Part shown: positions 4,457 through 51,300 of the stretch, one piece after another
How the letters are laid out: each line of letters starts with the position of its first letter
Numbering within the stretch: position 1 is the first letter of the stretch
Assembly: GCA_000708835.1 (NCBI GenBank)
Contig: DF236987.1
Coordinates: 239,328-303,327 of the forward strand
Origin: Klebsormidium nitens
Lineage: Eukaryota > Plantae > Klebsormidiophyceae
Length of the DNA stretch: 64,000 bases
Direction: 5' to 3'
Program-made: the position numbers and the translations under genes
The notes under the pieces: generated by a model
Database searches by the model: none
Told to the model about the DNA's origin: nothing
Seen by the model: only the letters and a program-made list of their open reading frames with translations

Positions 4457-5461
4457 ATGTCCTGTGTTGTGCGACGAGTAGAGTAGGAAGCACTTCGTTT
4501 TTGAGACGGGCCAAAGGTAAACAGGTACTGCAGGCTGCTACTATGATCAGGCACGCCGGACGCTCTTGAAGGACGATAAATATGTCCGACGAGCTGTTGG
4601 CCACATCGGCTGAGAGTAAATTGCTTTTGCTTCGACCCGCACTGGAATCAATGTCACTGTCAGATTCAAATTGGTTGCGTGGCTTCCTTTGCGCAGCTGC
4701 GCTGGGCAGCAGATCCATCATTGCTAGCCATGTTAATGAATGCTGGGGTCATGGGAGCACGAATATAGTCACTGACGCAACGCATAAGCACTTTGTAATC
4801 AAAGGCTCCACAAATTGAAGTCACATAAGCCTGGCTCCTGGCATATGCCGCCATATTCGACGTCATGCATGTATTGTCACCATTTCATTCACACTGCGCA
4901 GCATCCTGCCGAGCTGGTGCGTGACGTCGGAATGTAGCTAGCTAGGCTTAAGAGCTCGAACATGTTCACGGTCACTCATGGTGCCCCATGCATCACCGGT
5001 GCGCACGGGGCACTGGTCACTACGCTGCATTCAATGATTCGAGCGTAGTTCGCAGCATTTGAGCGTAGTACGTGCAGCATGTGCGATCGGCCGGCTATAT
5101 ATCCTAATTGCCAATTTACATGTTGACTGCCCAGGGTCGCCGCATGCCATGATGCAGTGTCACTTGAGAGAAACTGACGAGCTACTTGGTGCATGCAGCA
5201 TATAATTTAGCACATACTTGGATTGCAGGACTCCAGCAATGGCGCCCAACTCAACAAAGGCAGCTGGTTTGCCCTCGCAGAGCAGTCTTCGTAGAAGCGA
5301 TGCAGACCGAGTGATGGCAGCATACCAAGGGAGATCTTGGATAATGCTGTAAGACCACACGTTGCAAAAGGCCGCCCCCTCCGTTACGTCATTCAATCGA
5401 AGTTTTACCTTTACAAGAAGATATACCTTACTAATGTGCGAGTAGCAGTCACTATGTGCGA

Positions 5462-26400: not shown

Positions 26401-29400
26401 TTTCAAGTGTTTGTTTCTCGTGATCTTTGCTTCCGGTCGACATCCGACTGTTGCCCACCTTCTTGGACAGGCCTTTCCTGTCAACCCCCCGTCTGACTCA
26501 CACAGTTCAACCCCGTCACTCCATCCTAACCGCACAACAACAGACCCCACCCCCTTCCAAGCACACTCCGAGCTCTGGTCCGAAGCTCTCGCAGACGCCT
26601 CCCCAGATTGCTTACACCACAGTCTCAGCGATGTTCGCTCGAGCCCGCACGAGAGCCATGCACTTCCGTCAGATGACGCTGCCAAAACGTGCCCTCCCCT
26701 CGGACGTTCAGGCCCTCACAGAAACAGCACACAACCAAGAGACGACGCTCTCGAGTCCTGCACGCCGCTCACAGATCATGCAACCGCAAGTAAAAGCAAA
26801 AGCCCACAACGGCGCCTCACCGCCATCGAACGCCTGCAAAGGGCCCTTTCTGGCACGAGTTCACGGCAACCTCACGGACCCCCCCAAAAAAGACCCTCGC
26901 CAGCACCCCCCCTTGGAGAGGAGTCCTCCAAGCAACCAACTCACGCCTCGTCTGTTCCGCCTGTACAGGCGTCGGCCAAAGAGCACGGCAGTCACCGAGC
27001 CCCTCCTTCCGGCCCCCCTCAGGACCGCTCCGCTCACACTCCCCCTCGCAATCATTCCGCTCACGCCACCCCCATCCCCTCCCAGGTCGCCGCAGCACAC
27101 GCACAGCCCTACCGGGGGGATGAGACCGAAGACTTGTCGGGGTTCAACTTTGCCCCCCCCCCGCCGCTCAGCTCGTCGTTGCCGCGCCCCTCGAGCACCA
27201 CAAACTCCGACCGGAATCAACGGTACTCCGATCCGCTGCCCGCCAAGCGGAGGGAGGAGGGGGGCCACTACGCGGCATCAGCGCACGACGCACACGATCA
27301 CGTAGGCGCTCTCACTCTGCCACGTGTCAGTTTCCAAGATACGATCCTTTCCAGGTTACAACCCAACTTGCCCCGAGCTCGACGAGGCTCGGACATGCCA
27401 TCCATAACGATTGCATCAGGTTCTTGCTTTACGGGTCTTTCTTTGCGAGCTCGAAGTATCAACGCTTGACACGTCTTCTTTTTTAAATGGTTCAGTTTTG
27501 GACGAGTTTACAGAGCATGTGCTTCTTTGCCGTCCGCTCTTTTTTCCTCTGGTTTTCCCTGGCTTTTTTTACCCGTCTTATTGAGCGCCCATTCGCTGAT
27601 CAACTACGAACCTCAGGTGGCTGCCTACATTGAGAGCTCTTATTTCGTTCATCTCCCTCTTCATGTTTGGGAGCCATTGCCCCTCCGTCCTCCGTGCACG
27701 CTCCACTCCAGCACTCCCCCTTGCTGTCGTTTCCAGAAGTCATGCCTTTTGTCCCAGTTTCTGCCTCCCTTGTCTTCCTCCCTCGATCCAAGCAACGATC
27801 CCAAATGCGGTCAGCCGTTTCGCGCCTTTCTGCATCACTTTTACAAGCAAAACCATCCCCCTTCTCCAACGCAGGCTCCCTCCAGGTTCGTTCCACCTGG
27901 CCCATTACTTTCAGGTCCGTCACGCACAACGGCGCCTTCTTGGCATCCCCCTGAACAGCAACTTTTCCACCCCCCTTTTCCATTGCAGGTCCGCCTCAAG
28001 TTCGCCCCCCCCCCCGGTCGGATTAGTCCAAGGTCCCGGTCGCTGTCATGCATTCCGGCCGCTTCTAGAAAACGCGAATCAACTTCCCCCTGAAAAGCAA
28101 GTTCTCTATCCCCCTTTTTCCATTGCAGGTCCTTCAACCCCCNNNNNNNNNNNNNNNNNNNNNNNNNNNNNNNNNNNNNNNNNNNNNNNNNNNNNNNNNN
28201 NNNNNNNNNNNNNNNNNNNNNNNNNNNNNNNNNNNNNNNNNNNNNNNNNNNNNNNNNNNNNNNNNNNNNNNNNNNNNNNNNNNNNNNNNNNNNNNNNNNN
28301 NNNNNNNNNNNNNNNNNNNNNNNNNNNNNNNNNNNNNNNNNNNNNNNNNNNNNNNNNNNNNNNNNNNNNNNNNNNNNNNNNNNNNNNNNNNNNNNNNNNN
28401 NNNNNNNNNNNNNNNNNNNNNNNNNNNNNNNNNNNNNNNNNNNNNNNNNNNNNNNNNNNNNNNNNNNNNNNNNNNNNNNNNNNNNNNNNNNNNNNNNNNN
28501 NNNNNNNNNNNNNNNNNNNNNNNNNNNNNNNNNNNNNNNNNNNNNNNNNNNNNNNNNNNNNNNNNNNNNNNNNNNNNNNNNNNNNNNNNNNNNNNNNNNN
28601 NNNNNNNNNNNNNNNNNNNNNNNNNNNNNNNNNNNNNNNNNNNNNNNNNNNNNNNNNNNNNNNNNNNNNNNNNNNNNNNNNNNNNNNNNNNNNNNNNNNN
28701 NNNNNNNNNNNNNNNNNNNNNNNNNNCGCATTCAGCCCCTGGGAACGCAGATTAAAATGCCCCCCCCCCTTTTTGTTTTGTGCAGGCAGCCCCCGGGTTC
28801 GCCCCCCCCTCGCCGATCCACAATGAGATCCCGGTTGCCGTTACGCACTCCGGCCACGCGGTGCGTCAGGACTCGTACAATCCGCACCAGCGGACGCCGT
28901 CGGCAGACTCCAGAGAGCCCCTCGCGGACCCGAAGCGTCCGGTGACCGCCAGTGAGCTGCAGAGCATGGGGCGGGAACTGAGGAGCGGCAAGCCGGATCT
29001 CATCAGGTGAGGATTCGTGTCTTAAGAGTCTCCAAAGTGCTCGGTGGGTTTGCTTTTATGGAGGCCTGTTCTATTGCTTGCTTTCGATAAGATTCTTCAA
29101 AGAGCGTTGAAATTTTCGAAAGAAAGAGGGATTTATCGTCTTGAAACTTCTATCGCGACCGCTGGGAAGTCGTAGTCCATGGTGGGGGGAGTCAGAAAGT
29201 CAAGCCGCTTTCCTAGCCCCCGAAAGTTGGACCTACGTCGAAGAACGGATCCGTCCCGATTCTGTCGCTGTGCGTTCCGCCTTCTCCTAGCGGTCGTCTG
29301 CCATCGGGTTGTGTGCGATCGAAAGTGTCGAACGAAACCGACTTATCCGCAGGGCTGCCCCCAGCGACCTCCGGCTGCTGGCTAAAATTTGCGCGGAGAA

Positions 29401-31701: not shown

Positions 31702-33360
31702 CGCGTCTGCACTATGCATGTGGTCTGTCGTGTTTGAGAAAGTTTGTCACGGGTATTCGATGCACAATCTGGGGCGTCCCGACGGACATCTTAGCTGCTA
31801 CATAGGAGAGCTTGTATTGTATCCACGGCTTTATCGGCGTGTGGCGCGGAATGCGCACGAATTCTAAGTGCTATGTGGTGGTAGCGTATAAATGTAAGTA
31901 GAAATTGAGCAGAGGCTACTTTGACGTACTTATTGGCCTGGTTGAAAGGCAAGGGTCTGGCTAATAATGTGAACATCTACTGTAAGTGACACCTTCGTCA
32001 CAAGCTAGAGACACTCAGCTTTGAATCTAACCAGAGTTTGGCAAGCAAGAGTCTCCTGATTCACGCCATTTCTGTGGAGTTCGGATCATGGTTTCAGGCT
32101 TAGATGTGCATACGGTCACCACACTCGCATGGCTGCCCTACTTGCAACTGAGGGAGTCCATGTACATATGTTGCACGAGATTTATTTTCGCAAATTGCAG
32201 TTACAAGCTGAGTTCGATAGTTTCCGGCGTCGGTAGTACCGGCCACACATAAACCTAGCTCACTGAGTGATGCTCAGTCACCGTAAAGTCACGTGATTGA
32301 GCTTGACACACTGACATGTGACTGAGAGCTTGCTGACTAGGGTAGCGACCCGTTTATCGCCAGATGCAGCCTCTCGGGTCTTAGCATGCTTTCAAACTTG
32401 GCATTATGTATGTCGCTTAGGTAAACACGAGGTATCTACGGTGCTATTTTCGACCCTCGTGAATCGCCGCGGAGGCCCGCGTTCGGCCCCGCGACTTCCG
32501 TACGAATCACCCATATACCCCGTGACGCGGTTTGGGGGTTTCGCGGGGAGTGCGGGGGGCCTGCCCTGGGCCCGCTCGCCGTAAAACCCCCCAAAGTCAA
32601 GGGGAGCCCCCAAATGTCTCGGGAGGAACTGGGGATTTGCCTCTAGAAAGCCTTGAATATATGAAGGCAGAGCTGTCTTTTAAGAAAATATATACCTGTG
32701 AATATCCTTCTGTGCTCTCCTGACATTGTACACTTAACCTTAGTAGGCTTGCCTCCTTAAGTTGATCCCCTAAAGGTTCGTTTCCAGGGGATATTCTAAG
32801 AGAAGGTCTGGGATGGAGCACCCCCTTTTGTGGTCCCCATGAGATTTTCGTACGTTCAAAGCCGTTATACAGCATAATTTGTTTCCCCTGTGATAGTCCG
32901 GCGACCTCGGTACCGTCGTAAGCTGTCCACGTGCACCATGTGTGCTGGCCCGGCCTGGCCGGCGTCAAGCTGCATCACACTGCATGCACTGACTGCAGCA
33001 CTTGGTCATGGGCAATTCATATGGCTGGCATTGGCTGCACTAGCTGCGGAGTCTCAGTCATGTAGTGCTTCCTCTTGAAGTATATTACCGTATGAGTCTA
33101 CCTACCGTGGGTTGCTTGGGTTCAATGCATGCTCTGATGGCCAACACGTTATGTCAGCTGGTCAGCTGGTCATCTCAAGCAGCTTGGACATCAAAATGTC
33201 ATTATCTATCCATCCTAATAGCTGCACTGCCAAACGTGTCCCAGCTGACTGAGACTGGAGGGGTTGAGCTAGCGGCCAGACCACTGAGCTAAGTTCTTTG
33301 TGTTGAGCTGTCAGACGAGACACTTTCCAAGGGATTGTCTTCGATTTGTGAACATGGCAG

Positions 33361-36116
33361 CTGGAGCAAAAGAGTCAAGCGTTTTGGGGGGCAGATCCAG
33401 AGCACCCCGTCTCCTTCATGAACCAGCTGCATTTCAAAGGGTTCATTTGGGACGAAAATGAACCTACAGAGCTCGGAACACCTGCTGTTTTCCACTTTGG
33501 GCATGACACCAGGTTCTCCATAGATAAGATCTGGGTAGCTGTTTGCAGCAGAATGTTCATCAGGAGAGATAACAAGGGGGTGTGCTTTGCTTTGAAGGAC
33601 ATGGCCTTTGAATATTACCAAGCTGCTATGCGTTTCAACAGCTTCACTCGCGAGCAACCCAGCCTATTATACAAGGACAGAGAACTCCTTTGGTTGGCCA
33701 TCCATGTAGCTTACAAACAGCTGGGCAATCCTTGCTCAGAGCAGGCTCGGATTGTCGAAGCCTGCCACCTTGTGGCGCACGTGCAGAATCCAGCTGGACA
33801 AAAGCCTGGTGATTTAGAGGAGTTGCTGACAGAAGAGGAGAGGGTAGCCGCTGCAGAAGCAGCTCAGCACCAAACAATGGAGGAGATGATGGAGACTATC
33901 ATCGATCAGGGGCTGCCTACTCTCACCAAGCTGCGCCTAGCTGATATGCTCACAGGAAGTGTGTCTGGCACTGCATTGAGGTCACTCGCTAGCGAGCTTC
34001 CCCAGGAGCCACCTAGGCCTCTCAGAGAAGCAGATCTGCGGCGCTTTGAGGAGGAAGGGCGAAGGGCAAGGTCTCAGCGAGCAGGTCGCCGCAGCGGCAG
34101 TGGGGCACGTGTTGTCCGGAATGCGCAGCGTCCAGACTGGGGTGTTGATGGGGCGGAGTTTGACTAGGACTGGGAGGTTGATGAGGAGCTGCAAGAAGCG
34201 GTGGATGCAGCGCAGGAAAGGGCAAACGGACAAGAAAGCGCGGAGGAGTCAGGGGCAAGGCTCTGTAAAGCCTATGAAAAGTTACGCGAGCTGCGCACGT
34301 TGCGGGCGGCAAAGAAGGGTTTGGAGGATCACCTACAGCCCCTTGGAGGGCTGATCGCTTGGATGGCGTGCTCCTCGCTAAACAAGTATGAGACGCTGCG
34401 GAAGCTCATTATGTACGAGGCACGGAAGCCTTTCAGCTACTTCAACTCCGAACTTGGGGAGAATGTGACAGCGGAGCCTCAAAATTGTGCTCGCATTGTC
34501 CTTGAGAAGTATTCTATTAAAGATGAGTGCATCCCTGCTCTCTTCAAGTGGAGCGAGCGGGCTTATAATGATCCAGAGTCTGCAGAGCATAATCAGGGGG
34601 CGGTAGAGGCATTCAAGGAAGGTATCCAGGAATACCTTGCCGATAACCTGCTCCCAATCCCCAAGAGCATTGAGTACATCATCGATCGAAAGCACGCCCG
34701 CGGAAACAGTTTCCTTTGCGTCTATAATGAAGCCCGAGAAGCAATCCTGGTTAAGGGGCGCAGAACGGAATTGGAAGGATGCATGGTCCGCATCCACGGG
34801 GTAATCAATAGGAGGAAGAAGCTGACAATGGCGGGAGGGATCTCAGTCCCAAGCTTAGCCACAGCTCGGCAGGCCTCAGCAGATGCAAAGCAACTGACCG
34901 AGCATACCCTTGGCTGGCATGTTGACAAGCTCACCCCCTCCTATTACACCTGTGAAAAGGACGGGCAGCGGACGCTTCAAGATTTGTCGCTGAGGTTGAA
35001 GAAGCTTGCAACTAATGTAACAGCCACAGAGATCAAGACCTGGTTCAGTGAGCATGCGGCAGTTGTGCCAACGCAGGTGCGTATCTGAACGTGCCTTCTT
35101 CTCCAAGACTAACTGAACTGAAAGTTGCGCCTATCTCATTGCTCTTGTGTAACACTGCTACATTAGTTGGCAAAGCTTATGTTCAGTTTCAGGGCCCTCG
35201 TCTTACGTTCTCAGTTTAGGCAATGTGTTTCAGAAGGTACCAGTAACTTGTGGCGCTAGCATTGCTTCCTTTCTTTCTTTCTGAAGAGAGTGAATTGATT
35301 GATGCGCCTTTTTGAGGACATCCAGCTTCATGAGTTTGCTCGGTGCTACACTCGATCTTCAGAAAAAGCACTTCCATTGCTTCCATAGCTTCCATTGTTC
35401 CCATCTCTTCAGACTCTCTTGCCGCCTTCAGAAAGGTGAGGACAGGCCAGGCCCAACAGATTGTACTGCTCACATAAGATTAGCGCAGCAGTACTTGTGA
35501 CAAGACCTCTGACAAGTCCCGGCAAAGGGGGTCGTGCTGGCGGCAAAGGATGCTGTGTGGAACTTTTAGCTCACGTTTGCAATGAAGGACCAGGGACAAA
35601 GGGCAGAAGAGATGCGCGTGCAGGACATGCAACAGAAAATACAGCTGAATCTTGAAGAATGAGCGTAACAATCCTGGTGCTGACTCTTCTTGTTTGTTAG
35701 CAGGTCTACAAAGACAATGGAGGTGTGAATCGGAGTGGTTCGGAGGGGGTTTCCTGGATCGTTGAGTTTGCAAAAGATGCGAGCTGCTGTGACGACAAGT
35801 ATGCGGACATAGAAGCGGCGCTGATGGTGCGCCGCTCCAATGAGCATCTTTTTCGGGGACAGCCGCTTGATATGTATCGACTTTTGAAGAGGGCAAGAGG
35901 TAAGTGCTGACGGTTGCTTTCGAATAAACATGATGAGCAGGACCCTCAAGATGTCCCGCTACGAGTCTACTGTTTGATCTTAGAAACAGATTACTTCAAG
36001 CAGAATTGTCTTTGTGGATGAATGTGTAAATGTAAAGTTACTCTTCTGCCTCAGGTCAAGTGTGCGACCACATCCGTAAACTTCTCACGCCCGCACCTGA
36101 TATTCATGAAACCTGA
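33361..36116 (+). pseudogene. Element gene A: large unknown protein with a C-terminal SWIM-like Zn finger and one in-frame TAG
   Basis: ORFs 33418-34167 and 34201-35088 share a frame and are separated only by TAG at 34165-34167. Donor at 35077. The last exons 35704-35899 and 36055-36116 give SWIVEFAKDASCCDD...QVCDHIRKLL. The middle exons and the start are unresolved. Confidence 0.6.
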
Positions 36117-36442
36117 CTCCGAATCTAACTTGGTCGGGGCCTAGTGGAACAGATTCGAATGATGAAACGCTTCAATCTGTTTGCCACTTGAACCTCGAGA
36201 CCGCCCAAGAAGATGGTAGACTTGGCTGCACAACGTGTTTCACTCGGTTTAGTTCAATAAGATCAAAGAAGCGGGTATGGTTTATTGGTAGAACGTCTCC
36301 TCTTAGGAGGAGAAGGAGCGAGTTCGATTCTCGCTGCCCGCCTTGAGATCCTGGTCGGTTGGTTGACCTCGCCGTCCACGAAACTGCCGGCAACTTGACA
36401 TTGATCGCTCAAGAGTTTCTGTGTTTCTTTCGTCCGCCTCAG

Positions 36443-39400
36443 GCGGCAACTTTACGTGTGGAGAGCAGTTGAAGGACAAGCTTCTGAAGGACGCCGAAGA
36501 TCGAGGGCATCTTCGTCCCACCCCCGCCGGCACCCCGTATTTCAACGGGGTAGTCGTCGAAGCAACTGATGGAGCGACCGTTCTGGGCAAGAGTAATTGT
36601 AACAGCCGTATCCAGATCATTTCGGAAGAGGCCTTCACAACCGGGGCTTCCAAGTTGGACCGCTTTTGGGATGTGACGGGAGGCGAGAGCAAGGTATGGA
36701 GAGCCCAGATCTGCCTCAGCCGGGACCAGGCTGAACAGCTACGGGAGAGTTGGCCGCGCATGGAGGATGGCGCCACGCATTTATCTCTTGCTCAGGTGAG
36801 TTTCAAAACCTGGTCGAGACCGTACGTTCCGTTTGGTTTGGCGTGAGTTTGACTGTGTTCAGACTGGTCCGGAATGGTGGAGTGAGGTACTTCAAGAGTA
36901 CTCCGCTGCTCATATTGAGAATCGGACTTCGTATCCCGGCTGCGTGTGCTGATGTCACATATTTGTTTTGCACCGCCACAAATTAAACACAAGTTGGATA
37001 CGTGAATCCTTAGTCTCAATTCTCTCCTTACGTAGCGGGGACTCGAGCAAAGCAGGCGCGAGCAGCAAGGTAGCAGGCAAGGCAAGGCAAGGCAAGGCGA
37101 TGCAAGAGCGTTTTGTGTTTGTTCGGATGCTTGGCCGTGCGCCTCCTTGCCGTAGGTCCCCTTACTTTTACCAAAAAAGTAGATTTACATTGTGCGAGTG
37201 GCATACCAGGGCGGCGCCGAAAGTTGCTGTGCCAATATTAGCAGGCGCGGCTGAAGATTCGTCTTGAAGCGTCTGGTAGATGCCCCGCTACGCCGTTCAA
37301 CTTGGCTCCTCCAACAGTTCAGTTGTTAATTCGTGTTGAAAACCTATGCTACTGAACTCCGTTTTGTTTGCACAGGCGAGGCTGCTTACCCAAAAGTATT
37401 TCAACTCGACTGTATTTTCCTTTCAACACGAGAGTGGAGAAGTTACCAGGATACGAGCACCCTGCAAATATATGATTGGGGACTGTAAGTCCTTATGCAT
37501 ACATATGGGGATGGACAACAAATGTCCGTTCTGCACAGCGAAGTATGAAGATTAGGATACAGTGCTCTACGGTGAACTGCCAAGGGACCCGGAATTCAAC
37601 CGCAAGAGCTGGGTCCGTTACAAAGATATCTTGGCACGTTTGGTCGCGTATTCCCCTCTCAATAAAACCTTCGTGACGTCCCTCAATGACGTGGACTCTA
37701 CCCAGGATTTCGTCCTCAAATTAAACGAGGTCTCCGAACCATTGCGGCTAGGATCAATCCTCTCCTCTCTCAGCTCCTGTCTAACGCCTCCTAGCACGCT
37801 CGACCACCTGAGCGTCCTCGAGAAGTCTGATTATATTCTCACCACTCTTCTAAGAAGCGAAAGTACCTCTGTAACATACCCCTGTCAGCAGCTTGCCAAG
37901 CTCTAGCACTCTGCTCCTCTTCGACCCTCGAAGAGCTCCAATTCCAACCATAACAAGTCAAACCCTCCAGGTCTTAGCTCTCGCCACATTCTTAGAGGAG
38001 CAAGGCCTGCTTTCGACCTTCCTCTACAAGGACCTTTCTCAAGCTCAAATGAGGTCCGTCATCGGCCAAGCTCGGACTCGTTGTGCACAGGCGTCCGCTT
38101 GCTTCGCCCTGTTTAGAGAAATCACGGCTGCTCTTGAGCCAGCAGAGGACAACAAGGCAATGTGGGATGTTCTGGAGAATAGGTCAATCAGGGGCTTGGG
38201 CTTCAAGCGGGCCAAAAATACTAAGAAGGGGATTGAGGCTGATACGGCGGAGCAAGTGGTGGCTTTGCAACTGTGCCCCATCTCGAAGTCGAGAACGCAA
38301 ACCCTGGCCAAGTTCGCAAAAGCAGAATGCTATCATGTCACGGGGCTGCCCGTTGACTTTCAAGGAGCGAGAGAAGACGGCGATCTGCCCCTTGAGAAGC
38401 TTCCGGAGCCAATTCCTCCATTCATGCACACTTTGGTCCGTGTGGGGAAAAAGGTGCTCGCTCTTTTGCAAGACCACGCTTTAGTCGGAGAAGATGGGGA
38501 CGACCGGTCTGGGGCACGCTTGGAGTTCGTCTTTAGGCAAACTGCTGAAGCCAAGACGGAAATGTTGGCAAAAGACGAAGCAAAGCAGGGCGATCGTATA
38601 TCAACTGCGATGAACGGAGAGCACACCCGCCTCATCCTCAGCCATTATAAGTGGATGTTTGGAGGAATAATGTCCCCCAGGTATGACGTCACTCCAACTT
38701 GTACCTTCGCTTCGAATCTCAATCTGTTGATACAGTCTTCTGACTACTTTGCAGGTCGTGCTCGTTCAGACGATGTGCTGGCAAGGGTCCGATCAAAGGT
38801 CACCCTCTAGTAAAGACCGTTGAAGTTTTGCTGACGTCATTTCAGAGCTCTCACCGGCTGATAGTAAGGGCAATTCGAACACTTCTCTGACGTTATAGCC
38901 TTAAAAGCTGAGTCGGGCCCAAGCGGCTCCATCAGATCGAAAGTCAGGACTTCGGACCGGATTCCTAGAGAGATTTGCCAGCACCTTATAGCGACCTGCA
39001 TCAGTACTAGCTCTAAAGTTTGACTTCCTTTTAACACGTGGCCACTCTTGTCTTTAGGGATATGCAGCTGCCAGGCCTCCTCACCATGTACATTGGACAA
39101 GTCTATGCCGACCAAAGTCCGTCACGGGAATCTCGGAGCCTGCTGTGGCTGCTCGGGAATCTGATTTGGAATTTGATCCGGGTTATTGACGCCCTTGCTC
39201 GCGCCAAAAGAAAGAACGACAAGAAGCCAGTAGTCCAGACCAACCACATGCACATCATGGCTGTTGAGATTCCGAAGTTTCACGAGAGCTGCGACATCCC
39301 CCTCCCAAAACTGTTGGAAGAAAAGTTGGAGGCCTGGCAAAAGGTTGCGAAGGAGGCAGGATTGAAACGGAGCGACAGGAAAAGCGACGTGGTGGAAACG

Positions 39401-42400
39401 ATGTATCGAGAAGAGTGGATGCGTGAGAATGCAATGCTACTGTACGGCTTGCGAGGCAGAAACCCCGAAGTTGCGAAAAAGGAATTGAGCCAGTTCGTCG
39501 AAGCCACAGTCCCAAACTTTCTCGTCCACAGCTGTCTCTACAATCAAAACCCAATATTCCGTCAAACCTTCTCTCAACTCCTCCACATTCTAGCAGAGCG
39601 GGACTACACTGAGGATCTCTTCTTTGTCTATGCACCCCACGAGAGCTCCCAGTCCGCAGCCAAAGTCCTCCCGCTCAGGACACAGCGCGCATGCCAGTGC
39701 ACCTGCCACTGCAAGTGCGGCCCCTCAACGGGCGACTCTAGCTCTGACTGCTGTAAGGCAAGCTGCAACTGCAAGTGCTCTGAGTCATGCTCCTGTCAAA
39801 CAGGGCCCGCGGAAACCTGCCGATGCTTGAAGGAGGTCTCGCTGGTGAGCTTGACCGGGGTCGGTCCAGGAAAGGATAAATGGGAACCATTGCAGTGGTG
39901 CGAAGGAGCGGGCAAGGTCGCATTAGGAGGCCCTATCGACCCCGAAAGCCAGGTCGCCCACGTCAGGGAGCTGTTGGAGACAAGGCGGGTGGGACGAGTG
40001 GTTACACGGGGCGAATGGGGGTCACTCTGGCCTCTGCGTTTATACATCCACAACAGCGCCGCGTGCCGCATCCAGGCAGCCTTCCGCCGATACCTGCACA
40101 GAGACATTTTGCAGAAGGCGGGCCAACAACGAGCGGCCTTGTCACGAGGTGGGAACACTCGAAGGTCGATGGTCAACCGTGCAGCTTTTTCGATTCGTAT
40201 CGGCTTGATAGCAGCCAACAGCTAGCGGTGCACGCCTTTTTGATTCTGCTGACGGTGCATCAAGATTCCTCGCTTCTGGCCTCGTTTAATGGCTCTACTG
40301 TCAAAAGTCCGTTCCGAAACTTTGTCGTCTATTCTGGCAGGTATCACCCTGCTTGCTTGCGACCCAATGGTGGGGGACTCCAGCGGAGGCGCGCAGCTGG
40401 CCATCCAGGGAGAGGGTTTTGCCTCGTTTCAGGGACGCCCTGTTGTGCGAATTGGACTCGCTAAGCTGGCAGCGTAGCTGTCATGAGCGACAACATGATA
40501 ACGTGCTCGTCGCCTGCCGGAGTGGGGAGCAATCTGCCCCTCAGTGTGATGGGGACCTTCCCTTTTGCACTCGGGCGCGCAGCTGTCTTCCAACCTGGGA
40601 CTGGACACGGGCTAGAGCATCTGACTTGTCAGCCGATTGTGATGCAAAGAGCCTTCTCGTACGGTGGTGAGTGCAATCGTCCAAACAACTAGGTCAAAAG
40701 ATTCTACCTGCCCTTTTCAAGAGCTATGCTGACTGACTGACGTTGTGTCACACATCACTTTGTCGTTTTTGGTATCGTAAATTTCGATTGTGCGGAAGTT
40801 TCAGAGGCCTAATATGCTTACTGTCAAAGACAACATTCCCCGCTCACTTTGAAGCAGATTCAGAACTCAGTAAAAGTTCCGATTTGAATCTGAAAGACAA
40901 GAGTCATAGGAGTTAGGCCGCATGCAGGTTTGCCTCAGAAGTCCGCCGCGCGTGCGCGGGCAAGTACAGATCTTCCCATGCTGTGGGACTCCCGTTTCAA
41001 TTCTTATGTTCTGGTATGTCAACTGCTCTTCGAATCATACGCAGTCTGGACGATCAAACTCCTCTCTACTTTCCTGTCAAGCCGTTTGAGCAATCTGTCG
41101 CACTGATCAGGACCACGTGTCGACGGCGTAGAACCTGCTCAACTTCCGACTTGTGGAGGCACACTGCGGATCAGCGGAAGCAACCTTCAAAGAGCGACTG
41201 TGCGGAGAGGAGGAAGACAACGTGGCGCCGGTTTCTCGGACGTTGAGTGCAGTGTGCTGGAGAGCACGCGAACACATGTGACCCTGCGCGTTGAAGCGGG
41301 CCTTGGCAAAGCCCATCGTGTATTGCTCGGGAACGCGTCCGGCACAACTTCCGTTTCGTCCGGGTACGAAGGTGAGTTCTTCTCGTCCCAAGTCGGCTGA
41401 GACCTATCTGATCAATGGGCAGCTGAAATCAGTTTTCTCAAGCCGCCTCTCTTGACCTGCTCGACACCCCCACGTTGTACCGTTGTCATCGGGGTTCAAC
41501 GGCAGATCAGGTCATATTACCTGTGATTGAATTGGTTGATTTTCAGAAACATTCAATATTTAAATGTTGCTTTGCATCGTTGACAGAGCCTTCAATCACG
41601 GAGGTGCGAGTTGGTGACAAGCCTCTCGAGACTGCGGGTGGGCAAACCGTCGAAGTGGTCGGTCAAAACTTGGGGATCGGTTTGCCAGACGAGCTCACCG
41701 TACAAGTTGGTAAGTTGCGAAGTGCAATAGAGGTTTTCAGGTTCAAAGAGTCATAAGCGTCAGACTTTCGAATTCTTGTAATAAGTCCGTGACCAGTTCG
41801 GGTGGCATGTCTGTCCTTTTTTATTTCCTTGCGCGGCGTCTAATTTTGCTATGGCTGTCCAGATAAGAAGTTATAATTGTTGAATCCCGATCGAAGCTAG
41901 CCTCATGCTTGCGTCAGGCCCGCTCTTTTATTCCATCCAAGTGTGATTCCAATCGAGATTCACTGTGGCACTTTGAAACGCTGTTTCAACGCCGTTGTGT
42001 TCCATAAACAGGCGGACAAACGGCGAAGTGGAGAATGGTCGAGGAGCACATCCGCCTCATCGTCACCCTGCCTCCTTCGAACGGGGGCCACCAGAACCTG
42101 CAAGTCTGGGTAGGGCAAACTCTTCAGCAGCGCCCCTCTTCCATCACTCCAGCCTGCCATCTCAGATACGACCTACCGAAGGTGCTCTCTTGTACAGAAA
42201 TAGGTCGAGTAGGGCAGATAGTAACCGTGGGAGGAAGCAACTTCGGGTCGGCTGGTGAGATCGCTGTGCGCATCGGCGGAATTTCGTGCGAAAAAGCTCA
42301 AGTGTCCGTTAGACATACCCAGATAAGCTGCCAAGTCCCGGAGGGCAAGGGACACAACCTCCCGGTCGAGGTGTGCGTGAATGGCCAGTGGTCCGACCCC

Positions 42401-43269
42401 GACAATCGCGTAGCCTGCTTCTCGTACAAAGGTAAGCCACTCGGACTCAAGTAACCATTTTGGGAACTAGGAGCATCAGGATGGCTTCAAGTTGCACAAT
42501 TCAAACCTGACCTGAAAGCAGGAACTAGGAGCGACGACTCGCCGCCTGCGCTTCTGGTCGAGACGTGACTGTCCAAACCTCATCGATCCAAGATGAGTCA
42601 GAGGGCCTTGGGAATTGTCTGACTGAGATTGCCGTGTGCTCCAAAACGCAGAATCGACAGACGCGTGCGGGACGCGTGCATGGCTAACACGTATTTTGTC
42701 CGATCATACAGTTGAGGGTGCTCCAAAGAGGCCGCAGCGGATTGGTCCATATGTTACACCGCCCTCAATTTCGGAAGCTGAGCCTATTTTCAAACAGTGG
42801 CGGTTGAGCACCTACTACGAGCGGAAGGATCCTATGGCCAGGAAAGGTATACACCGGCGCCGCATCCAACCCTCTAACTCGATTGGGGCCCCATCGGGTC
42901 TGCCAAGCTCAGTGCTGACCAATTGACCTACCCAGTTGAGCTGGCTTTAAATTTCCCGAGAGATTGCCGCTCTTTGTACACGTGCAGGACCGGTGTGAGT
43001 GTTCCTAACCGGATTACGTCACCAGATTCTCGTCCAGAAATAACTCTTCCGAGTTGTCGCCTGCAGATGTCCATGGGAACGATTTCACGAAGGAGAGTGT
43101 ACGAGCTGCACAGGAAGCATATAAAAAGCTGACGCTCGGGTTAGCCGAACTCAGTGAGAAGAAAAAAAACGAAATACTGAACAGGTGTATATTCGGCTGG
43201 CAGAAGCTGAAAGCTGAGCGTGGACTTACCGAAGCCCCTGCACAAAAGAGAGCCAGAACAACTGCTTAG
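36443..43269 (+). pseudogene. Element gene B: unknown N-terminal region, Cys-rich insert, IQ motif and about four IPT/TIG repeats; disrupted
   Basis: Coding blocks 36443-36795, 37376-37484, 37539 to about 37900, 37893-38810, 39038-40148, 40341 to about 40665, about 41110-41371, about 41586-41709, about 42012-42432, about 42710-42850 and about 43068-43269. TIG-like units include CDPMVGDSSGGAQLAIQGEGF, GQIVTVGGSNFGS...IGGISC...HTQISCQVPEGKGHNLPVEV...FSY. TAG at 37553 and a frameshift near 40470. Joining all blocks into one gene is inferred. Confidence 0.6.
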
Positions 43270-44129
43270 CCTTGCTTCTCTCTGGCATCCGGATAAGTGC
43301 CAACACTTTCGCCATGCGGGTGATTGAAGCCACTGTTTGGGTGCGCGGGAGCTAGCGAGCTAACAGCCTCTAGTAGAGCCGTGGGCGGCGGCTGAAGTTG
43401 AGGGATTGTATAGGCTTGAAACTTGTCATGGCTTCCGGTAAGGAGGACCGCTCATGAAGCTTGGGCCCGGTACGGGCTAAATGTCATGCTCCCATGTGTA
43501 TGTTTCGCGATGATGGCGCAAGAGTTCATGTAGCTGTCACGCGCTACAGCGACGGCGAAAGGTGTTGGACGAAATGATCACTGACGATGCCACCGCAATC
43601 GATGCTTCTCAGTCTCATGCTTGCTCGATTGCAACTTACTTATAGCCGAGCCTCACAAGGCTTGCCAACCGCATTGCCACCAATTCCACATGGCGAAACG
43701 ACTGAAGCATGTGGCGATCCAATTTGGTGCAAGTTGATGTGCGGCTCTGCTCGGTGCACGGATATGGCGGCAGCGAAGCTACACTCACTAAACAAAAGAT
43801 GTACGTTCAGCAGAGGGAAGCCTGACGCATGAGCCTGAGATCCTTATGCTGTTTATTAGAATGCCCAAGAGCAATGGACAGTGATATCCTCCAAATGGAA
43901 TATAAGCTCCTGGAACTAAGAGTTCACGAGCGCGAAGTTTAATCCATATTTGACAAGCAGTGTTACAATTACAAAGCAAAAAGCCTCGAACCACTTCAAT
44001 AAATAGTGGGACTTGAAGTGCTCTATTACCCTAATCTGCTAGTGCCCTTGGCCAAATCCTGTCCGATCGTCCACCACCCACCAATTCCATTAACCTAGGC
44101 CAACGGGCCTTGTTGAACACAACAAGCTT

Positions 44130-46710
44130 CTACTCTGACTCAGAGTTGAGCTCTTCGAGCCAATCTTCGACAATGATTTTTTCCTCCAACTTCCGTTTCT
44201 TCAAGTAGACCGCCTGTACACCGTTCTTGACCCTTTTATTTCCTCTGATTGACGTGTCGACGTCCTCCGGCAAGGGGATGCTGACTGTCCATTGAAGCGG
44301 AAAGGAAGATTGCTCGAGCTCCTCCACGTTCCTTGTAATGCGGACGCTCTCACTCCTGCATAAAAAGGCAACAAGGATTGTGTTCACCGGATGAGAGTAA
44401 TTGCAACAGACTGGTCCTGACACCGAGAATCTTATGGATGCACCATGACGAAACAAGACCAGACTTTTGGATCTCAGCAGTGGCTAGGTTGCGACCACTT
44501 GAGGAACTAGCAGAACTTACGAAGTTGATTTGTCAGCAAGGCAACAACTCACTTCGAACATCTGGCCCACGACCCAGACATCAGTTTTAGGAACGCTTTC
44601 GAAGGGCCAACAAGCTCAACTGTCTGGGCAGTAAAGTTATTTGACCAATTGTTTAAGCGTTTCTAGAGTCAGCGGGACACGACAGTGATGCCCCACCACA
44701 ATCAACAATCAAAGGAGTCGACGGACATGCAAAACCTGCTATTGACCCCCTATCAGAATCAACAATGAATCTGCCTATCCGGAGTAAAGAACTAGATACA
44801 GCTGAACGTTTCAGCTCAATCTGCACCTTATTTCTTTCCAAGACTGGTTAGAAGTATTCAACTTGTGGCATACGCATGCAGATGCCACATCATGTTCCTA
44901 AAACATGGAGGTGCTATAACGAACTGCTCTCACCCAATCTTCACATCTTCGTCGATCATGATGCCGCTGGCATCACCACCGAGCACCAAGCTCTGGAAGG
45001 GCAGCCCTGGGGTAGTTCTCTCTGGCTTGAACGTAGTTATGGAACCAGCGCCGACGTAGACGTACATCTCAAAGTAGTCCTCCGTGTCCTTCACCCCAAC
45101 CACAGCCCCAGGATGCAGGGACTGCGGGGTGAAGTCGTAAGGGCTTGGCAGCTTGGGAAGCACGGAGACCTCCTTCTTGACACTCTGCAAGAGACAAGAA
45201 TTTACTCAATGTAAGCAGATGATGATACATGCTGTTGCTGAGAGACCATGTCAGACACTTGAGTCTCTCACATCAGAACGGCCACATCAATATTTAGCTC
45301 TTGAATCAACGTTTGGATCATGCTGCAATCAAGCAAGATAATGCTACACTGTTTGAAGGCTGCAGTATTGGTGATTAGGCAAGTCCAGCTCTTCAGGGAA
45401 TACCGTGGGGACAGATGAAACTTCCACTGAAACCTGTGAAGCCCTCTGTACTCCAAATCTTTGCTTAGCTGTAGAGCAGCCAACAGTGTGTACCAAAAGG
45501 CCCCTTTTTACCCACAGTCTGCGATGCTTTCAAGCAGAAAGTCTCCACAAAGCCTTTGAACAGCCAGCATATGAAGAACCAGCGAGGCAAAACCAGCTAA
45601 AGGACACTTTCTCACCTGCGGTGACGACTTCGGTTTAGAAGCCATCTTTGGTACGCGACGTCGAAGACGAGGCTCTCTGATTCCACGTTGCCCACCCTTC
45701 GCATCAAATCGCTCAGCGCAGGACTGCACTGGCTGTCATCAAACGTACGGTAGGGCGCGTGCCACTGCTTAATCTTCCCAATCGCTCTGACGTTGCTCGC
45801 ATTGATCACAAGACCCTCGCGGTACAGAATATTCCGATGCCTTTTGGTGCAGCCAGGGGAGAAGATAAATGGTTCAGAGGGCTTTGAGGCGGAGAGTGCC
45901 ACCAGCGCAGATGCTTGGTTTTTTAGCTTTGCTGTGGATGCAGCGGAGCCTGGGAGCTGCTTTTGAGCTGCTTTCTGGTTGGATATGTCGTGCAAAGCCT
46001 TGCCGACATGACCACGCGCCGCATTGTTGGCTGAGATCGGCGAAGCTGCACAAATCAGAAAAGCATGTTAAAGAACAATCCATGAACAGGTTCATGGCAG
46101 GTGTGTGACAACACTGAGGGACAAAGCAGAAGCAGTGTCGGTCTTGACATCATGTGGCATGCATTTCCAGCCGTTGGGACAGAGGGAACCTAGAAGACAA
46201 CTTTACCTATTATGTGCCATATTGCAACATTGATGCATCGTTTTAGGCCGCAGTTCCTAAAATGACCCAATCAGAGATAGAGGTGCTGAGCAACTGATTG
46301 TGACATGTCACAATGGCCATTGGGTCAAAATGCACTTACGGAAGTCCAGGGGCCGTTCACCGCCTTCCAAACGCTCCTGGACTGCCGTGTTGAGCAGCTT
46401 CCCTGCCTGGCCTCCTGATATGAGTGATCTCCATTCACAGCCATTCTCTGTGAGCAGGGCATCAAGCGCCCGATAAAGAGTGTCTCTAGGCATGCCCCTC
46501 TTTGCGGTGTCTGAGCTGCTGCTGTCACCCACAGAGAACACCTCTGAGCAGCGGTAAGCGAGCGCTAAGAGCTCTATCTTCTCGTCAACGGTCCTATCAT
46601 CTCTGTCAATTGCTGCCGCCATGCGAGTTGCAAACGAAGAGTCATTCAGCACCTCCAAGGGGATCCAGGAGTACCAGTGCTGTTGGTTGCCATGGGTCAG
46701 CTGAACGATG
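44130..46710 (-). CDS. Element gene C: spliced unknown protein, model incomplete
   Basis: Phase-compatible exons 46710-46340 (donor c|gtaagt) and 46045-45616 (donor ag|gtgaga). Further open blocks lie at about 45185-44930, 44841-44653 and about 44340-44130 (ending KKRKLEEKIIVEDWLEELNSESE). No family recognised. Confidence 0.5.
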
Positions 46711-48394
46711 CTAAGGCGCCGAAGTTGAAAAGGGGAAGACAGGCGACTCTGAAGCCTAAGGGGACAAGTCTCCTAATCATTTTCCTGGGCAGCTCTCTTC
46801 AGACCATGAATCCGAGTCATAATGCACTCGGATTATGTATCAGTAAGTATCAATGCTGCAGCCTGCGCCAGTGCAGGCGCGCCATGATGCACTGAACTGA
46901 ATTCCGACTTTGGAAGAGGGAATTGGCGGGAGAGTTTCAAACTTAGAACTATTAAGATAAATATGTAACATCAAGTGGAAGTGAATGCCAAGCGTTACAA
47001 TTACAGGTTCGATTCGGAAAAGCCCTCAAAAAAATCTGGGGGTCGTTCAAGGCCCATGGTTCCCCATGTCCACCCCCGTGACCACGCCATTCCAAAATGC
47101 CGTCGTTCGTTCGGTCCCCAGGCCTTGCCCCGACGGGCCCCGCTGGACGAACCCCCTGAATATTTTGTCGCCGGCATAAGGATTGGCCAGACCCCCGACG
47201 GTCCCCTGGCGGCACGGGTAATTTACGAGGCTCGAAAATAGCACCGTAGATACCTCGTGAAATTTATCCGGAAATCTGCCGTATGTACTTGGCTCAGTTC
47301 GATCAATTCTGGCACTGATGTGCCAGATGGGCCATGACGCCATCTTAAACAAATGATCAGGCCCCTTGGAGATCTGGTAGGGTAGTCAGCCTGGCGCGTT
47401 CGAACCTCAAACATCAATTCCCATGTATGCCATGGAAGCCTAATATGGCCCATGTGGATACGGCGTTTTGAAATCAGAGAACATCATACATGGGCTGCGA
47501 CGCACATGGCATGATCAAGTACGTACGATACCGGCGCCATGTGTGCATCATTCATGCATACCGCCCATGGCATCTGCATGCATGCGATCAGTGCCGCGGC
47601 GACGCGCGAATATATATGTCTCACTCATGCTAGATACATCGACTTAGTATATCCTGCATCATGCAGTCTGCACATGGTGGCGGCCGGCAAATTGCCATGC
47701 ATGCTGATGGCAACGACGGTCCAACTACTTATATACAGGTGCATACGGCAATGATGCCATGATTGCGTGCGGCCGGCTAGGCTGACCATGAGGGACGATC
47801 ATGATTCGCTTGCAGCGTTTTCCTGTATCATAGTATCCGACAAAGTTGATTAAGCACTGTCAGTGTGGTGTACAAGACGCGTTGCATCATGCGTGAGCTA
47901 CTTATATATGTAAGCGCCTGGCTCGAAGACTTGCCAATCAATCAGTAACTTGGACCAAGCTAGCGGCAGGCTCAGTGCAATCTAGGCATTCACTCATAGT
48001 TAGAACCAGGTTTCGTCTCAAGTTGGTCGCTTCGAGGATCATACTGGGAAGTCCATTGCCTAGGCCAACTTGAATCCAAATCGAAGAGCTCCAAGTTCGA
48101 TGTACGGGTTCTCGGTCCACTGCTTTGAATGAACTAGTCACATGCTTCCAACACAGCAATCCTCAAAGGCCACAAGAAGCCGCAGGTCAACCTTTCTCGT
48201 GGACCAATCACCTGCTTATATTCTCCATCCAGTGAGATACAGTTGCACTCTTCTATCGTTGCACAAACTTCAAACGAACAGGGAGTCCCTAAAAGAAGAT
48301 AAACGACAGCCAAGCCTCACCGAAATCTTTGGAGCGGCACGTATCTAAAAAGCAAATGACCAACATTGTCGTACCTACACATCTGCCTCAAAGG

Positions 48395-51300
48395 TCACCT
48401 CCCAATTTTCCGACCGTCTCCGACGCCAACAACAGTCCCACCACCGCCGCTCCCTTCTCCGTCAACGTCCTCGGCCTCCTCCTGCTCTAATTGGACAACC
48501 TTCTCTTTTATCGCCGTTCCTAGTTTGGAGCTCTCCAACGCATCTTTCGCCGCCCCCGCCTCGTCGCTCAGCAACGACTTGGCATCGCTCACTTTTTTGC
48601 GCAGCTGACTCTGCTGCTCATCCATTCCGGCGCCCTCGGTGTCCGCCAGGCCGACCTGAACGGCGCCATCTACATAACCGATAGCAGGAAAGTTGGTTAA
48701 CTCTGGCGGTCAACGGTTGGTTAACCGTGGCGGTTAACGGCTGGTTAAAGCTCGCAGGAGAAGGTGCCTTCCCGAACCGGTACGACTGACAGGCCCGCCT
48801 GAACAGCGCCATCTACGTAACCGACAGCGAGAAATTGGTATAAAGTGGGGGTCAGTGGTTGATGGAAATGGGCGGTTAGCGGCTGGTTATATTCGCAGTT
48901 AAAGTTGCCTCCGCGAACCAGCACGACGGCTAGGCCAACCTGAACAGCGCCATCTGCCCAGCCAACAGCGGAGGTGTTAGAAACGGTATTCAACATGACG
49001 GTTAACGGTCGGCTGCAGTGGGGGTTGACAGCTGGTCAAAAGCTTGCAATTACAATTGCAATGAAAAAGCAGCACAACTGCCAACCAGCGAAACAGCGCC
49101 CACGCAAACCACGGCGAGATGAAATGTGAAGTTCGTTGACATTGACGGTCAATACTTGGCTCACTCTCGTGATGAAAACTCTGTGAATCTGCATACACCA
49201 AAAACGAGTGCGAGGCAAGGCGGCTGTTGGATCTGACGAGCGCCCTCCGCAAAGCACAGTAGAAACGATCAAAGATAGTTGCTCCCAGTCCCAGCCATTT
49301 CAGACCGATAATGTGGCACAGCATAGGAGTTGAACATAGCATGAAGGCAAGGATCCTGAAGGAAAGCATTGCGCCAAGCAGCAAGGTGAGGGGAGATCCA
49401 TATCGTCCAAAGAGCTCTGGTAGCCGGTGCGGATGTTGTCCTTTTCTCGTGGAAAAGATCGCAAAAGGACTCTGCCTGTTTCGATCGACTCATAGCCTTC
49501 TCACAAACAGACAAAGAGTTACACGAAAGCAACGTTTCCTATATCGCCAGGTTTCAATCACCGATGCAAAGCGACGCAGCCCGCGTTTGAACAATTGCAC
49601 GAACCCAGTGCCTATTACACAGACAAAAACCCATAAGAATCGAGTGTATCGAAGGTAATCAAACATTTCCAAAACGACTAGCTGATCAATCGACGATTCC
49701 AGAAGCCTAATATGCGCTGGAGGCCGAAGCTGAGGTCGTTAAGACGGCGCAAAGCTCCCAAACCGGTGGCACTCCACAAGAAGATTATGATTCCTGCCAC
49801 GTTACAATCTACGTGCAGAGGATCGGTAAGCCTCCTGTCCTAAACCCCCTTGTCGGCAAGATCGAAAGACAACGCGCCTCTGTGCCAAAAATCATGTGCA
49901 GAGGATCGGTAAGCCTCCTGTCCTAAACCCCCTTGTCGGCAAGATCGAAAGACAACGCGCCTCTGTGCCAAAAATCATGCATCTCCGATTTCAGAAAGAG
50001 TTAGATAGCCTGTCACTAAACGGCTCAACGCACCCATGAAACCGTTGCAAATCATATGCGCTTCCACTTCCTGATACGCTCAAGATTCCGCGCAGAAAGT
50101 CCTGCAAGCTCCTGTCGTGTCTCCTCTTGTTCAGAACATCAAAAGACAAGGCGCCCCCATGACGGACCGTCTGCCCAGTTTCAACAAGGAAAACTGTTCT
50201 GCCGAGAAACTCGAATCTGATCACAAACGAGCGATTAGACTTCCTTAAGAACGTCGGTTAGGAAGGAAAAAAGCAGAGCAAGGATGTCCGAAACAACCGT
50301 GAGATCGAGGGTGGTTGCTGCAAGGCCGGTGAATGGAGGAAATACTTGGCGTTGAAAAGCAACTCACCAGCAGCATCTCCGTTCCCCGCCTCTTTCACCG
50401 CCTCAATTGCTTCGCGCAAAGCACTTTCAGACACGTCGGCAACCCCCTCATCCCCCCCCTTGCGCGAGCCTGTTCCCTTGCCCCCCTGCTCGAACGACGA
50501 CCGATCGAACCAGTGCAGACCTGGAAACGACTCTGCAGAGGCAGTGGACAAAAGTTGTTAGACAGCGAATCTAAATCTTTCTTGGGCTGCTTCTATTCAA
50601 AAGCTTGATTGAAAAACAACAGTTTGAGAAAGAGAGAGGAGGCATGATAAAAGGAAGGAAAGTTGGACACCTGCAAAAGTAACCGTATGGATCCTTTAAA
50701 GCAATTCTGCCTGCTAATGCATCCAACGTTCTTGTGAAAGACTCTGACTCTAGCGGCAAACTCGACACCAAGCATAACGTACGACAGTGAATCACTTTCC
50801 GTGTTCACATAATAATCGCATCTCGTGAACTCAACCCCGGCTTCTTCATGGGAAGTGTCCGAGGCTTCTACATCGAAACCAGAAAGTTACATACCATCTT
50901 CAATTCGGACGATGAAAGAGAACAGATTTTAATACGAGCTTACCGTTCCCCTCCCTCCACCGCGAGATGCTAAACGGCCGAGTCTGTCTCCGAAGGTACA
51001 GGTACCCCCCCAACAGCAGAAGCAACAAAACGCTTGCTTGGATGCAGAAGCGCAGCTTGCCCCGAGGCCCCTTCCGGGGGTTCTCGGTCCTGCGGCGTCT
51101 CAGGGACTGCATCTCATCCTGAAGGTTACGAGCCTCTCCTTTGTTCTGCAAGCAGGATCAGAAGCTTGTTGCCTTTTCTTCTCCTTTCTGGATTCCTTCC
51201 AGAATCATTGAGTGGCTATCCCTTTGCCTCTCTCCTTCATTCTACGAGCCGGGGTCAAAGAGGCGTTCACTTTTCTCAGAGCTCAACTGAAAAGGTTACC

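Follow-up and report, generated by a model that had tools for sequence, protein, structure and literature searches.

The CACTA/EnSpm-Mirage-Chapaev-Transib (CMCT) clade of DNA transposons is the origin of RAG1. One arrangement known from this group is that of ProtoRAG, in which terminal inverted repeats (TIRs) enclose a transposase gene together with a second gene in tail-to-tail orientation. The clade has been defined to include EnSpm/CACTA, Mirage, Chapaev and Transib along with Plavaka, ESTA and Lanisha and is marked by DDE or DDD catalytic residues, a C(2)C motif, an H(3-4)H motif, 5'-CA..TG-3' termini and a target-site duplication (TSD) of 2-5 bp (PMC12730594). Within the streptophytes, Lanisha of the moss Ceratodon purpureus is a cut-and-paste lineage of the CMCT type (PMC8245031; Repbase Reports 2020; GenBank MT647524). 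Here we describe a 14.8-kb element in a 64-kb stretch of scaffold DF236987.1 of the streptophyte alga Klebsormidium nitens (hereafter the window; window coordinate = L004 coordinate + 23552). We consider it likely that this element is a full-length, inactivated, two-gene cut-and-paste DNA transposon belonging to a deeply diverged CMCT lineage. Its long plus-strand gene is predicted to encode a giant transposase, and its second gene, on the opposite strand, is a putative dedicated partner.

The element is delimited by two 39-nt TIRs, at 32426-32464 (plus strand, tip CACGAGG) and 47221-47259 (minus strand, tip CCTCGTG), which match at 37 of 39 positions (95% complementary) and constitute the longest inverted pair in the region. 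These arms with their CACGA ends had been recognized in an earlier sequence-only reading of the window, and our inverted-repeat search confirmed them: a 28-nt core of the TIR occurs at exactly two sites in the 64 kb, the two arms, compared with 0 expected (shuffled sequence gives none). Inward of the 39 nt, the left and right ends are unrelated to each other. Each TIR also holds inverted heptamers of its own, with CACGAGG at the tip (32426-32461 region) and CCTCGTG 22 nt further inward; this internal pair is not kept in the TIRs of the relatives L002 or L012.

The junctions read GGTAAA/CACGAGG on the left and CCTCGTG/AAATTTATCC on the right, so that AAA at 32423-32425 is matched by AAA at 47260-47262 as a candidate TSD of 2 or 3 bp. 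The AAA reported earlier on both flanks is therefore present, and its designation as a 3-bp TSD is not secure, since the flanks of the complete relative L012 (..GTAA and AATT..) have AA alone in common. For this reason the TSD is most simply 2 bp. Judged from these flanks it is probably AA, possibly with a third base, and the third A of the window may be a coincidence. The five bases outside the ends (GTAAA and AAATT in the window, TGTAA and AATTA in L012) form no 5-bp duplication as would be expected of Transib. In other strains, the implied empty site would take the form GGTAAATTTATCC or GGTAAAATTTATCC.

Relatives of the element are few. A word search with a 395-amino-acid exon of the long gene returned one metagenome relative, and an exhaustive search of 1.84 billion representatives returned only 35 relative proteins, consisting of the annotated K. 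nitens protein GAQ79805.1, several proteins of Cymbomonas tetramitiformis and open reading frames (ORFs) from two JGI metagenomes. The closest relative, L002 (~64% nucleotide identity), has an end that reads CACGGGACATCTATGGTGCTAATTTCGAGCCTCGT; its homology to the window opens exactly at the first base of the TIR (CACG) and continues into a homologue of gene A of the sequence-only reading; the sequence upstream is unrelated. L012 is a complete element of 13.97 kb, with CACGGG...CCCGTG ends and 27-nt TIRs (26 of 27 matching) that start CACGGGAC and were found by repeat search. The left ends of L002 and L012 thus begin at the same base as the left arm of the window. On the right, L012 and L007, its 96.7%-identical sister on another contig, both stop at CCCGTG, the equivalent of the window's CCTCGTG tip, and are followed by different flanking DNA. 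Because the sister copy ends at the same base within different surroundings, the family is mobile. The three TIR types have CACGRG....CTAYGGYGC in common while their transposases are only 30-60% identical, from which we conclude that ends and enzyme evolved together. In L005, L007, L009 and L010, which are distant relatives, BLAST did not detect homology to the TIR.

These data bear on the possibility that the two arms belong to separate small elements in opposite orientation, or form a chance repeat, and enclose genes that were resident in the host, such as a domesticated transposase-derived gene. We give this explanation hardly any credence. It would agree with the presence of one copy in the window, where no second copy or fragment of the element was found, and with the clustering of GAQ79805.1 at 90%, where this protein is the only member of its cluster. 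However, neither end has a partner arm close by, the TIR core is confined to its two sites, and the L002 homology opens precisely at the arm. The complete relative moreover has the same architecture between TIRs of its own, its sister copy has a different flank, and related copies hold nested insertions and are situated at contig breaks, as repeats are.

Within the element, the sequence-only reading had outlined three intron-containing genes, with A and B converging on C. This number is not upheld. GAQ79805.1 (P0003, 1252 amino acids, KFL_000380370; window 33553-40456) spans both A and B, and an annotated 419-amino-acid gene with IPT/TIG domains starts only 72 bp past its end. Furthermore, the C-terminal half of gene A, gene B and the IPT/TIG gene are one collinear unit in the relatives, leaving gene C as the second gene. 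The order of the blocks (gene A C-terminal half, 36424-36798, 37349-37732, 37953-38690, 39056-40150, TIG domains) is common to L001, L002, L005, L007, L009, L010, L011 and L012, and the unit is conserved in at least six diverged soil-metagenome relatives and in Cymbomonas. Because of this shared block order and the 72-bp annotation gap, we conclude that these parts would form one transcription unit, in which the annotated 419-amino-acid gene probably supplies the C-terminus of the transposase. Our estimate of the length of the entire protein is roughly 1,700-2,000 amino acids. Searches and fold predictions used single exons, proteins returned by the tools and natural uninterrupted ORFs of relatives; exons were never joined into a spliced protein.

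All parts of the long gene are on the plus strand. The conserved N-terminal region of the transposase (34168-35085, the C-terminal half of gene A) is collinear in L002 (63% identity) and in L009, L010, L011 and L012 (27-42%). Relative to L002 its dN/dS (the ratio of nonsynonymous to synonymous substitution rates) is ~0.14, with dN ~0.31 and dS saturated, and the comparison carries a clear signature of long-term purifying selection on the family. A small conserved exon at 35701-35901, which is also an exon of P0003, is kept in L002 and L012. The following exon (36367-36843) contains the first candidate catalytic Asp (TDG) and the first RNase H-like strands, as placed by the motif alignment and by the model of the relative P0042. 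The exon at 37340-37903 contains the second candidate catalytic Asp (IGD), the motif CPFC and an in-frame TAG at which the relatives have Tyr, and is not in the public annotation. Accordingly, GAQ79805.1 omits the conserved exon 37349-37732 (gap 36799-37967), the site of the second candidate catalytic Asp and of CxxC; the gap in the annotation is presumably due to the in-frame TAG. The first part of a helical insertion domain between the second Asp and the Glu occupies 37875-38807, where the model of the relative P0005 is helical.

Further downstream, the exon at 39035-40222 holds H-x-H, an EExxE with the candidate catalytic Glu, a Lys at +7, a Cys-rich run and an IQ motif, as located by alignment and by VIA. 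The Cys-rich run (39692-39830) follows the catalytic core and precedes the IQ motif (40070-40093, a weak Pfam match). It reads CxCxCxCxC...CC...CxCxC, the Cys positions are kept in relatives, and a function in binding metal or DNA is possible. The Ig-like IPT/TIG tail extends over 40549-43269 and comprises two TIG domains supported by Pfam, at 41107-41397 (1.4e-4) and 42008-42451 (1.7e-12), with a possible third between them at 41427-41753. The TIG domains are collinear in L007, L009, L010, L011 and L012, and in Cymbomonas (P0025 and P0035) they are fused into a single protein.

TIG and IQ are modules typical of host proteins, a stop interrupts the long ORF, and Pfam recognizes no transposase in the element. 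Such features would suit a non-autonomous carrier, in which the TIRs of a known transposon family captured ordinary host genes, among them one for a TIG/IQ protein, and were moved in trans with a transposase supplied from another locus. We regard this explanation, to which the sequence-only reading had also pointed, as very improbable. L002 and L012, with proteins that share only 30-60% identity with those of the window, have the same gene order beside homologous CACG ends, and variation in the TIR core goes along with that in the protein family. In addition, the D, D, CxxC, HxH and E motifs of the long gene follow one another in a RAG1-like order and spacing. The notion of cargo was not borne out either, since, the first ~250 codons excepted, related elements contain a collinear equivalent of every coding block.

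Our preferred explanation, a transposon encoding its own divergent transposase, is founded on motifs conserved across this family of about 35 proteins. The first candidate catalytic Asp (D1, 36568-36570) is in the conserved motif E(F/A)TDG(T/A)xV(V/L)G of block 36424-36798, as defined by the alignment. L011 has ANG at this motif instead of TDG. The second Asp (D2, 37481-37483) is in a GDxK motif of block 37349-37732, which reads ...YMIGDCKSLCIHMGMDNKCPFC... and is kept in every relative. CPFC follows at 37523-37534, 14 residues past D2, and CxxC is kept in L007, L010, L011, L005, L009, P0042 and P0044. For comparison, RAG1 has D708 and then C727xxC730. The spacing between D1 and D2 (D28 and D137 of P0042) is 109 residues versus 108 in RAG1. 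After the helical insertion, which separates D2/CxxC from HxH by ~350 amino acids, H-x-H (39245-39253) is found in 100% of 20 sequences, at a position corresponding to RAG1 H937/H942 with a different spacing. It precedes by 22-26 residues the Glu block LEExxE (39317-39331), which is 95-100% conserved, and a Lys (96%) is located seven residues past the last Glu.

Structure prediction had been suggested as a means of finding a DDE fold; run on natural ORFs of relatives, it placed RAG1 and Transib as the top matches, with modest scores. P0005, a natural 665-amino-acid ORF, was modeled with AlphaFold2 from a 31-sequence alignment. The model is helical, with a predicted local distance difference test score (pLDDT) above 80 at residues 300-480. 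By itself, Foldseek returned nothing at E <= 0.001 for either this model or that of P0042; its list for P0005 was weak and included HzTransib (probability 0.92) and RAG1. With VIA-align applied to this list, the top 20 rows were all RAG1, BbRAGL or HzTransib (Z 6.5-9.3 over 154-219 residues), followed by the P-element transposase (Z 5.5). In an unbiased search of 48,161 Protein Data Bank (PDB) chains, the top six were again BbRAGL (8.7), HzTransib (8.3) and four RAG1 chains (7.5-6.7), and the subsequent matches were unrelated four-helix bundles at Z <= 6.5 with about 100-115 residues aligned. Superposed on RAG1 chain 4wwx_E, model residues 274-484 fall onto RAG1 662-962 and end with the conserved Glu on the catalytic E962; the VIA alignments place model residues 480-484 at RAG1 958-962. 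The best shape matches in ESM-Atlas include clusters of Plavaka transposases.

The RNase H-like part is represented by P0042, a natural 269-amino-acid ORF covering D1, D2 and CxxC. Its model (mean pLDDT 66) is strand-rich in the N-terminal half and mixed alpha/beta around D1-D2, with strands 24-26, 37-44 and 54-63 surrounding D28. A wide search returned nothing above Z 3.3. In a second look, the top 19 rows were all RAG1/Transib (Z 3.0-3.4, rmsd 3.3-3.5 A, ~105 residues), and model residues 1-138 fall onto RAG1 567-707, which places D137 at D708. While each score is modest alone, we assign the RAG1 fold because both modeled parts match one family in the right order, because the conserved residues fall on catalytic and zinc positions, and because the gene sits between CAC...GTG inverted repeats. 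Taken together, the product of the long gene is predicted to be a very divergent DDE transposase with RAG1/Transib-like motifs and fold. The earlier suggestion of an uncharacterised recombinase was essentially right: the candidate is the joint product of the C-terminal half of gene A, gene B and the IPT/TIG gene.

Alternatively, the giant protein could be an accessory or regulatory factor built on a RAG1-like helical scaffold, the real recombinase being encoded by gene C or by the upstream ORF at 33418-34167. The Z of only ~3 between the RNase H-like part and RAG1 leaves some room for this, as does the fact that neither the partner gene nor the upstream ORF has an assigned fold. We nevertheless find it very unlikely. 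The partner product is short (its gene models total ~390 amino acids), and its rate of evolution far exceeds that of the long gene; the more distant relatives lack the upstream ORF. By contrast, the acidic residues, CxxC and HxH of the long protein are invariant or nearly so, and D1 and D2 are spaced almost exactly as in RAG1.

If the long gene encodes the transposase, the window copy of it is defective. TAG at 37553-37555 replaces the Tyr conserved in relatives, six codons past CxxC, and the in-frame sequence before and after it is conserved. It is a nonsense mutation in the predicted catalytic domain that leaves the transposase of the window broken. Because this TAG breaks its own transposase, the window copy would depend for its mobility on enzyme from an intact copy. 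A second in-frame TAG (34165-34167) is found upstream in an acidic linker past the first ~250 codons and ends the upstream ORF at 33418-34167 (the N-terminal half of gene A). This ORF has 57% amino acid identity to L002 alone and was not found in more distant relatives, and it could represent a small ORF of its own or serve as exon 1 of the transposase gene. The L002 stop (~9767) is two codons away, and an annotated intron at 33961-34188, bounded by GT..AG, would remove the TAG. The latter may thus be the natural end of the upstream ORF, be intronic (a retained intron) or be a coincidence, and we did not count it as damage. Both in-frame stops of the window are TAG between Asp codons (GAC TAG GAC and GAT TAG GAT).

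The second gene of the element, gene C (44130-46622), is on the minus strand, convergent with the transposase gene; the annotation splits it into two models (119 and 268 amino acids). A minus-strand ORF beside the right end of L012 and L007 is homologous to an ORF of L010 (25% identity, E 5e-6). A hidden Markov model (HMM) of the minus-strand ORFs of L012, L007 and L010 matches the window at 45615-46067 on the minus strand (E 5.9e-5); of the 1411 six-frame pieces searched, the runner-up has E 1.2. Direct BLASTP of gene C against the minus-strand ORFs of relatives gave nothing significant, and the partner gene evolves much faster than the long gene. Because the HMM of the relatives' partner ORFs matches the gene C region, gene C is, by profile similarity, recognizable as a diverged version of the convergent partner gene that is conserved in relatives. 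The exons of gene C have no Pfam match, and neither Kelch nor PHD was found. Feature searches of ESM-Atlas with a partner exon and with the C-terminal half of gene A were uninformative, with low recognition.

Several results weigh against reading the element as a transposon of the CMCT clade. In sequence searches, Pfam gave no transposase match for any of the 20 ORF pieces of the element, TIG and a weak IQ being the only matches, in keeping with the earlier statement that no transposase is recognisable; Pfam scans of the relatives and of the annotated protein likewise gave no transposase family. A profile search of PDB sequences returned no RAG1, Transib or other transposase chain at E up to 10. 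The H(3-4)H motif of the clade is H-x-H here, and the expected His spacing was not found. Structurally, Z 8-9 for the helical domain is, according to the tool, in a range that can be reached through a common helical arrangement, and the RNase H-like part reaches only Z 3.0-3.4 on a model of mean pLDDT 66. As for the element itself, no relative shows a right end of the subfamily to which the window copy belongs, the one copy seen in K. nitens has no intact ORF, and the TSD evidence comes from two elements that both have A-rich flanks.

We nonetheless favor the transposon and propose the following mechanism. The long gene would encode a transposase composed of the N-terminal region, the RNase H-like catalytic domain with CxxC, the helical insertion, HxH and Glu, and a C-terminal part with the Cys-rich run, the IQ motif and two, possibly three, IPT/TIG domains, while the small opposite-strand gene adjoining the right end would provide a partner. 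The transposase may bind the CACGRG...CTAYGGYGC terminal repeats, and the element would be excised by DDE chemistry and inserted into A/T-rich DNA through a 2-bp (possibly 3-bp) staggered cut. By analogy only, a flank-hairpin step as in RAG1/Transib is possible. The partner product and the IPT/TIG tail may have roles as well.

Around the element, composition gives no hint of the insertion, with G+C at ~51% throughout and no contrast with the surroundings. An assembly gap of 584 N at 28143-28726 explains an apparent 26% G+C at 28-29 kb. The element had been described as inserted between two ordinary host genes. On the left this holds, the neighbor being a U-box/ARM protein gene that ends at window position 31701; the right neighbor (48395-50477, minus strand) has no Pfam match and no annotated function. 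No transposase match was found among 10 flanking ORFs scanned with Pfam. Two relatives have themselves been interrupted. L005 contains at 920-7068 a nested element of ~6.1 kb with ~650-bp inverted repeats (87-88% complementary) and a 723-amino-acid C5 cytosine DNA methyltransferase (PF00145), inserted just upstream of the exon with D1. In L011, a long terminal repeat (LTR) retroelement at 14687-17910, identified by RT_RNaseH and integrase matches, interrupts the copy past the first TIG domain.

With this interpretation, a 14.8-kb orphan element and four gene models listed as hypothetical in the genome of a reference streptophyte become one explained unit, and the transposon clade that gave rise to the V(D)J recombinase gains a deep algal lineage. 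The IPT/TIG tail, the zinc-type H-x-H pair and the conserved convergent partner gene had no counterpart in the literature that we searched. Intact relatives in soil metagenomes (JGI 3300060284 and 3300060285) offer a route to testing a RAG1-fold enzyme with a 2-bp footprint and a non-RAG2 partner. A broader view, which we put forward as speculation and hold to be rather doubtful, is that both main green-algal lineages (the streptophyte Klebsormidium and the chlorophyte Cymbomonas) harbor an ancient, undescribed, superfamily-level branch of RAG1-fold elements, with a giant IPT/TIG-tailed transposase that needs a dedicated convergent partner. The two-gene layout would then be old and recurrent instead of an animal novelty, and the partner might be a RAG2-like regulator.

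Compared with described systems, the element is like plant EnSpm/CACTA in its large size, CAC termini, short TSD and possession of more than one gene. Unlike these elements, it ends in CACGA/CACGG and not CACTA, its TSD is probably 2 bp and not the 3 bp typical of CACTA, no subterminal repeat arrays were found in it, and no homologues of TnpD (Transposase_21 and associated domains) or TnpA were detected at E up to 1 among the exons, the annotated protein and the relatives. The CACTA/EnSpm lead of the sequence-only reading therefore survives for the wider CMCT clade (CA..TG, TSD of 2-5 bp, C(2)C) and not for the CACTA family itself. In the same way, its remark that CACTA motifs are missing is correct for the TnpD-type Pfam families, which are absent, and does not extend to the C(2)C and candidate D/D/E residues of the CACTA-Transib clade, which are present. 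None of the 35 relatives found among the 1.84 billion representatives is a moss protein, which argues against close kinship with Lanisha. KDZ, PIF/Harbinger, Academ, Maverick and tyrosine-recombinase elements were also weighed and set aside, as no domain match was obtained and the fold evidence is of RAG1/Transib.

Relative to the CMCT clade as a whole, the element has candidate DDE acidic residues, the C(2)C past the second Asp and the long insertion ahead of the Glu; its CACG...CGTG ends fit CA...TG termini, and its short TSD (AAA/AAA in the window, AA/AA in L012) is inside 2-5 bp. It differs from the clade in lacking a sequence match to any of its Pfam families, in having H-x-H and not H(3-4)H, in the far larger transposase with its Cys-rich, IQ and IPT/TIG tail, and in the conserved convergent partner gene. 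Transib, RAG1 and amphioxus ProtoRAG (PDB 6pqn, 4wwx and 6b40) are the best structural matches for both modeled parts, in chain order (RAG1 567-708, then 662-962). They share with the element a D2 followed by x-K and CxxC, a Glu followed by Lys at +7, and ends that start CAC. The element differs in its TSD of 2-3 bp, versus 5 bp, and no heptamer/nonamer-type end was seen in it; the similarity is at the level of fold and motif only, and the kinship may be with the whole CMCT clade instead of with Transib itself. Nothing observed links the partner gene to RAG2, whose fold is a six-bladed Kelch-type propeller: the partner exons gave neither a Kelch nor a PHD match in Pfam. In its layout, however, the element resembles ProtoRAG, with a transposase gene and a second gene placed tail to tail between TIRs.

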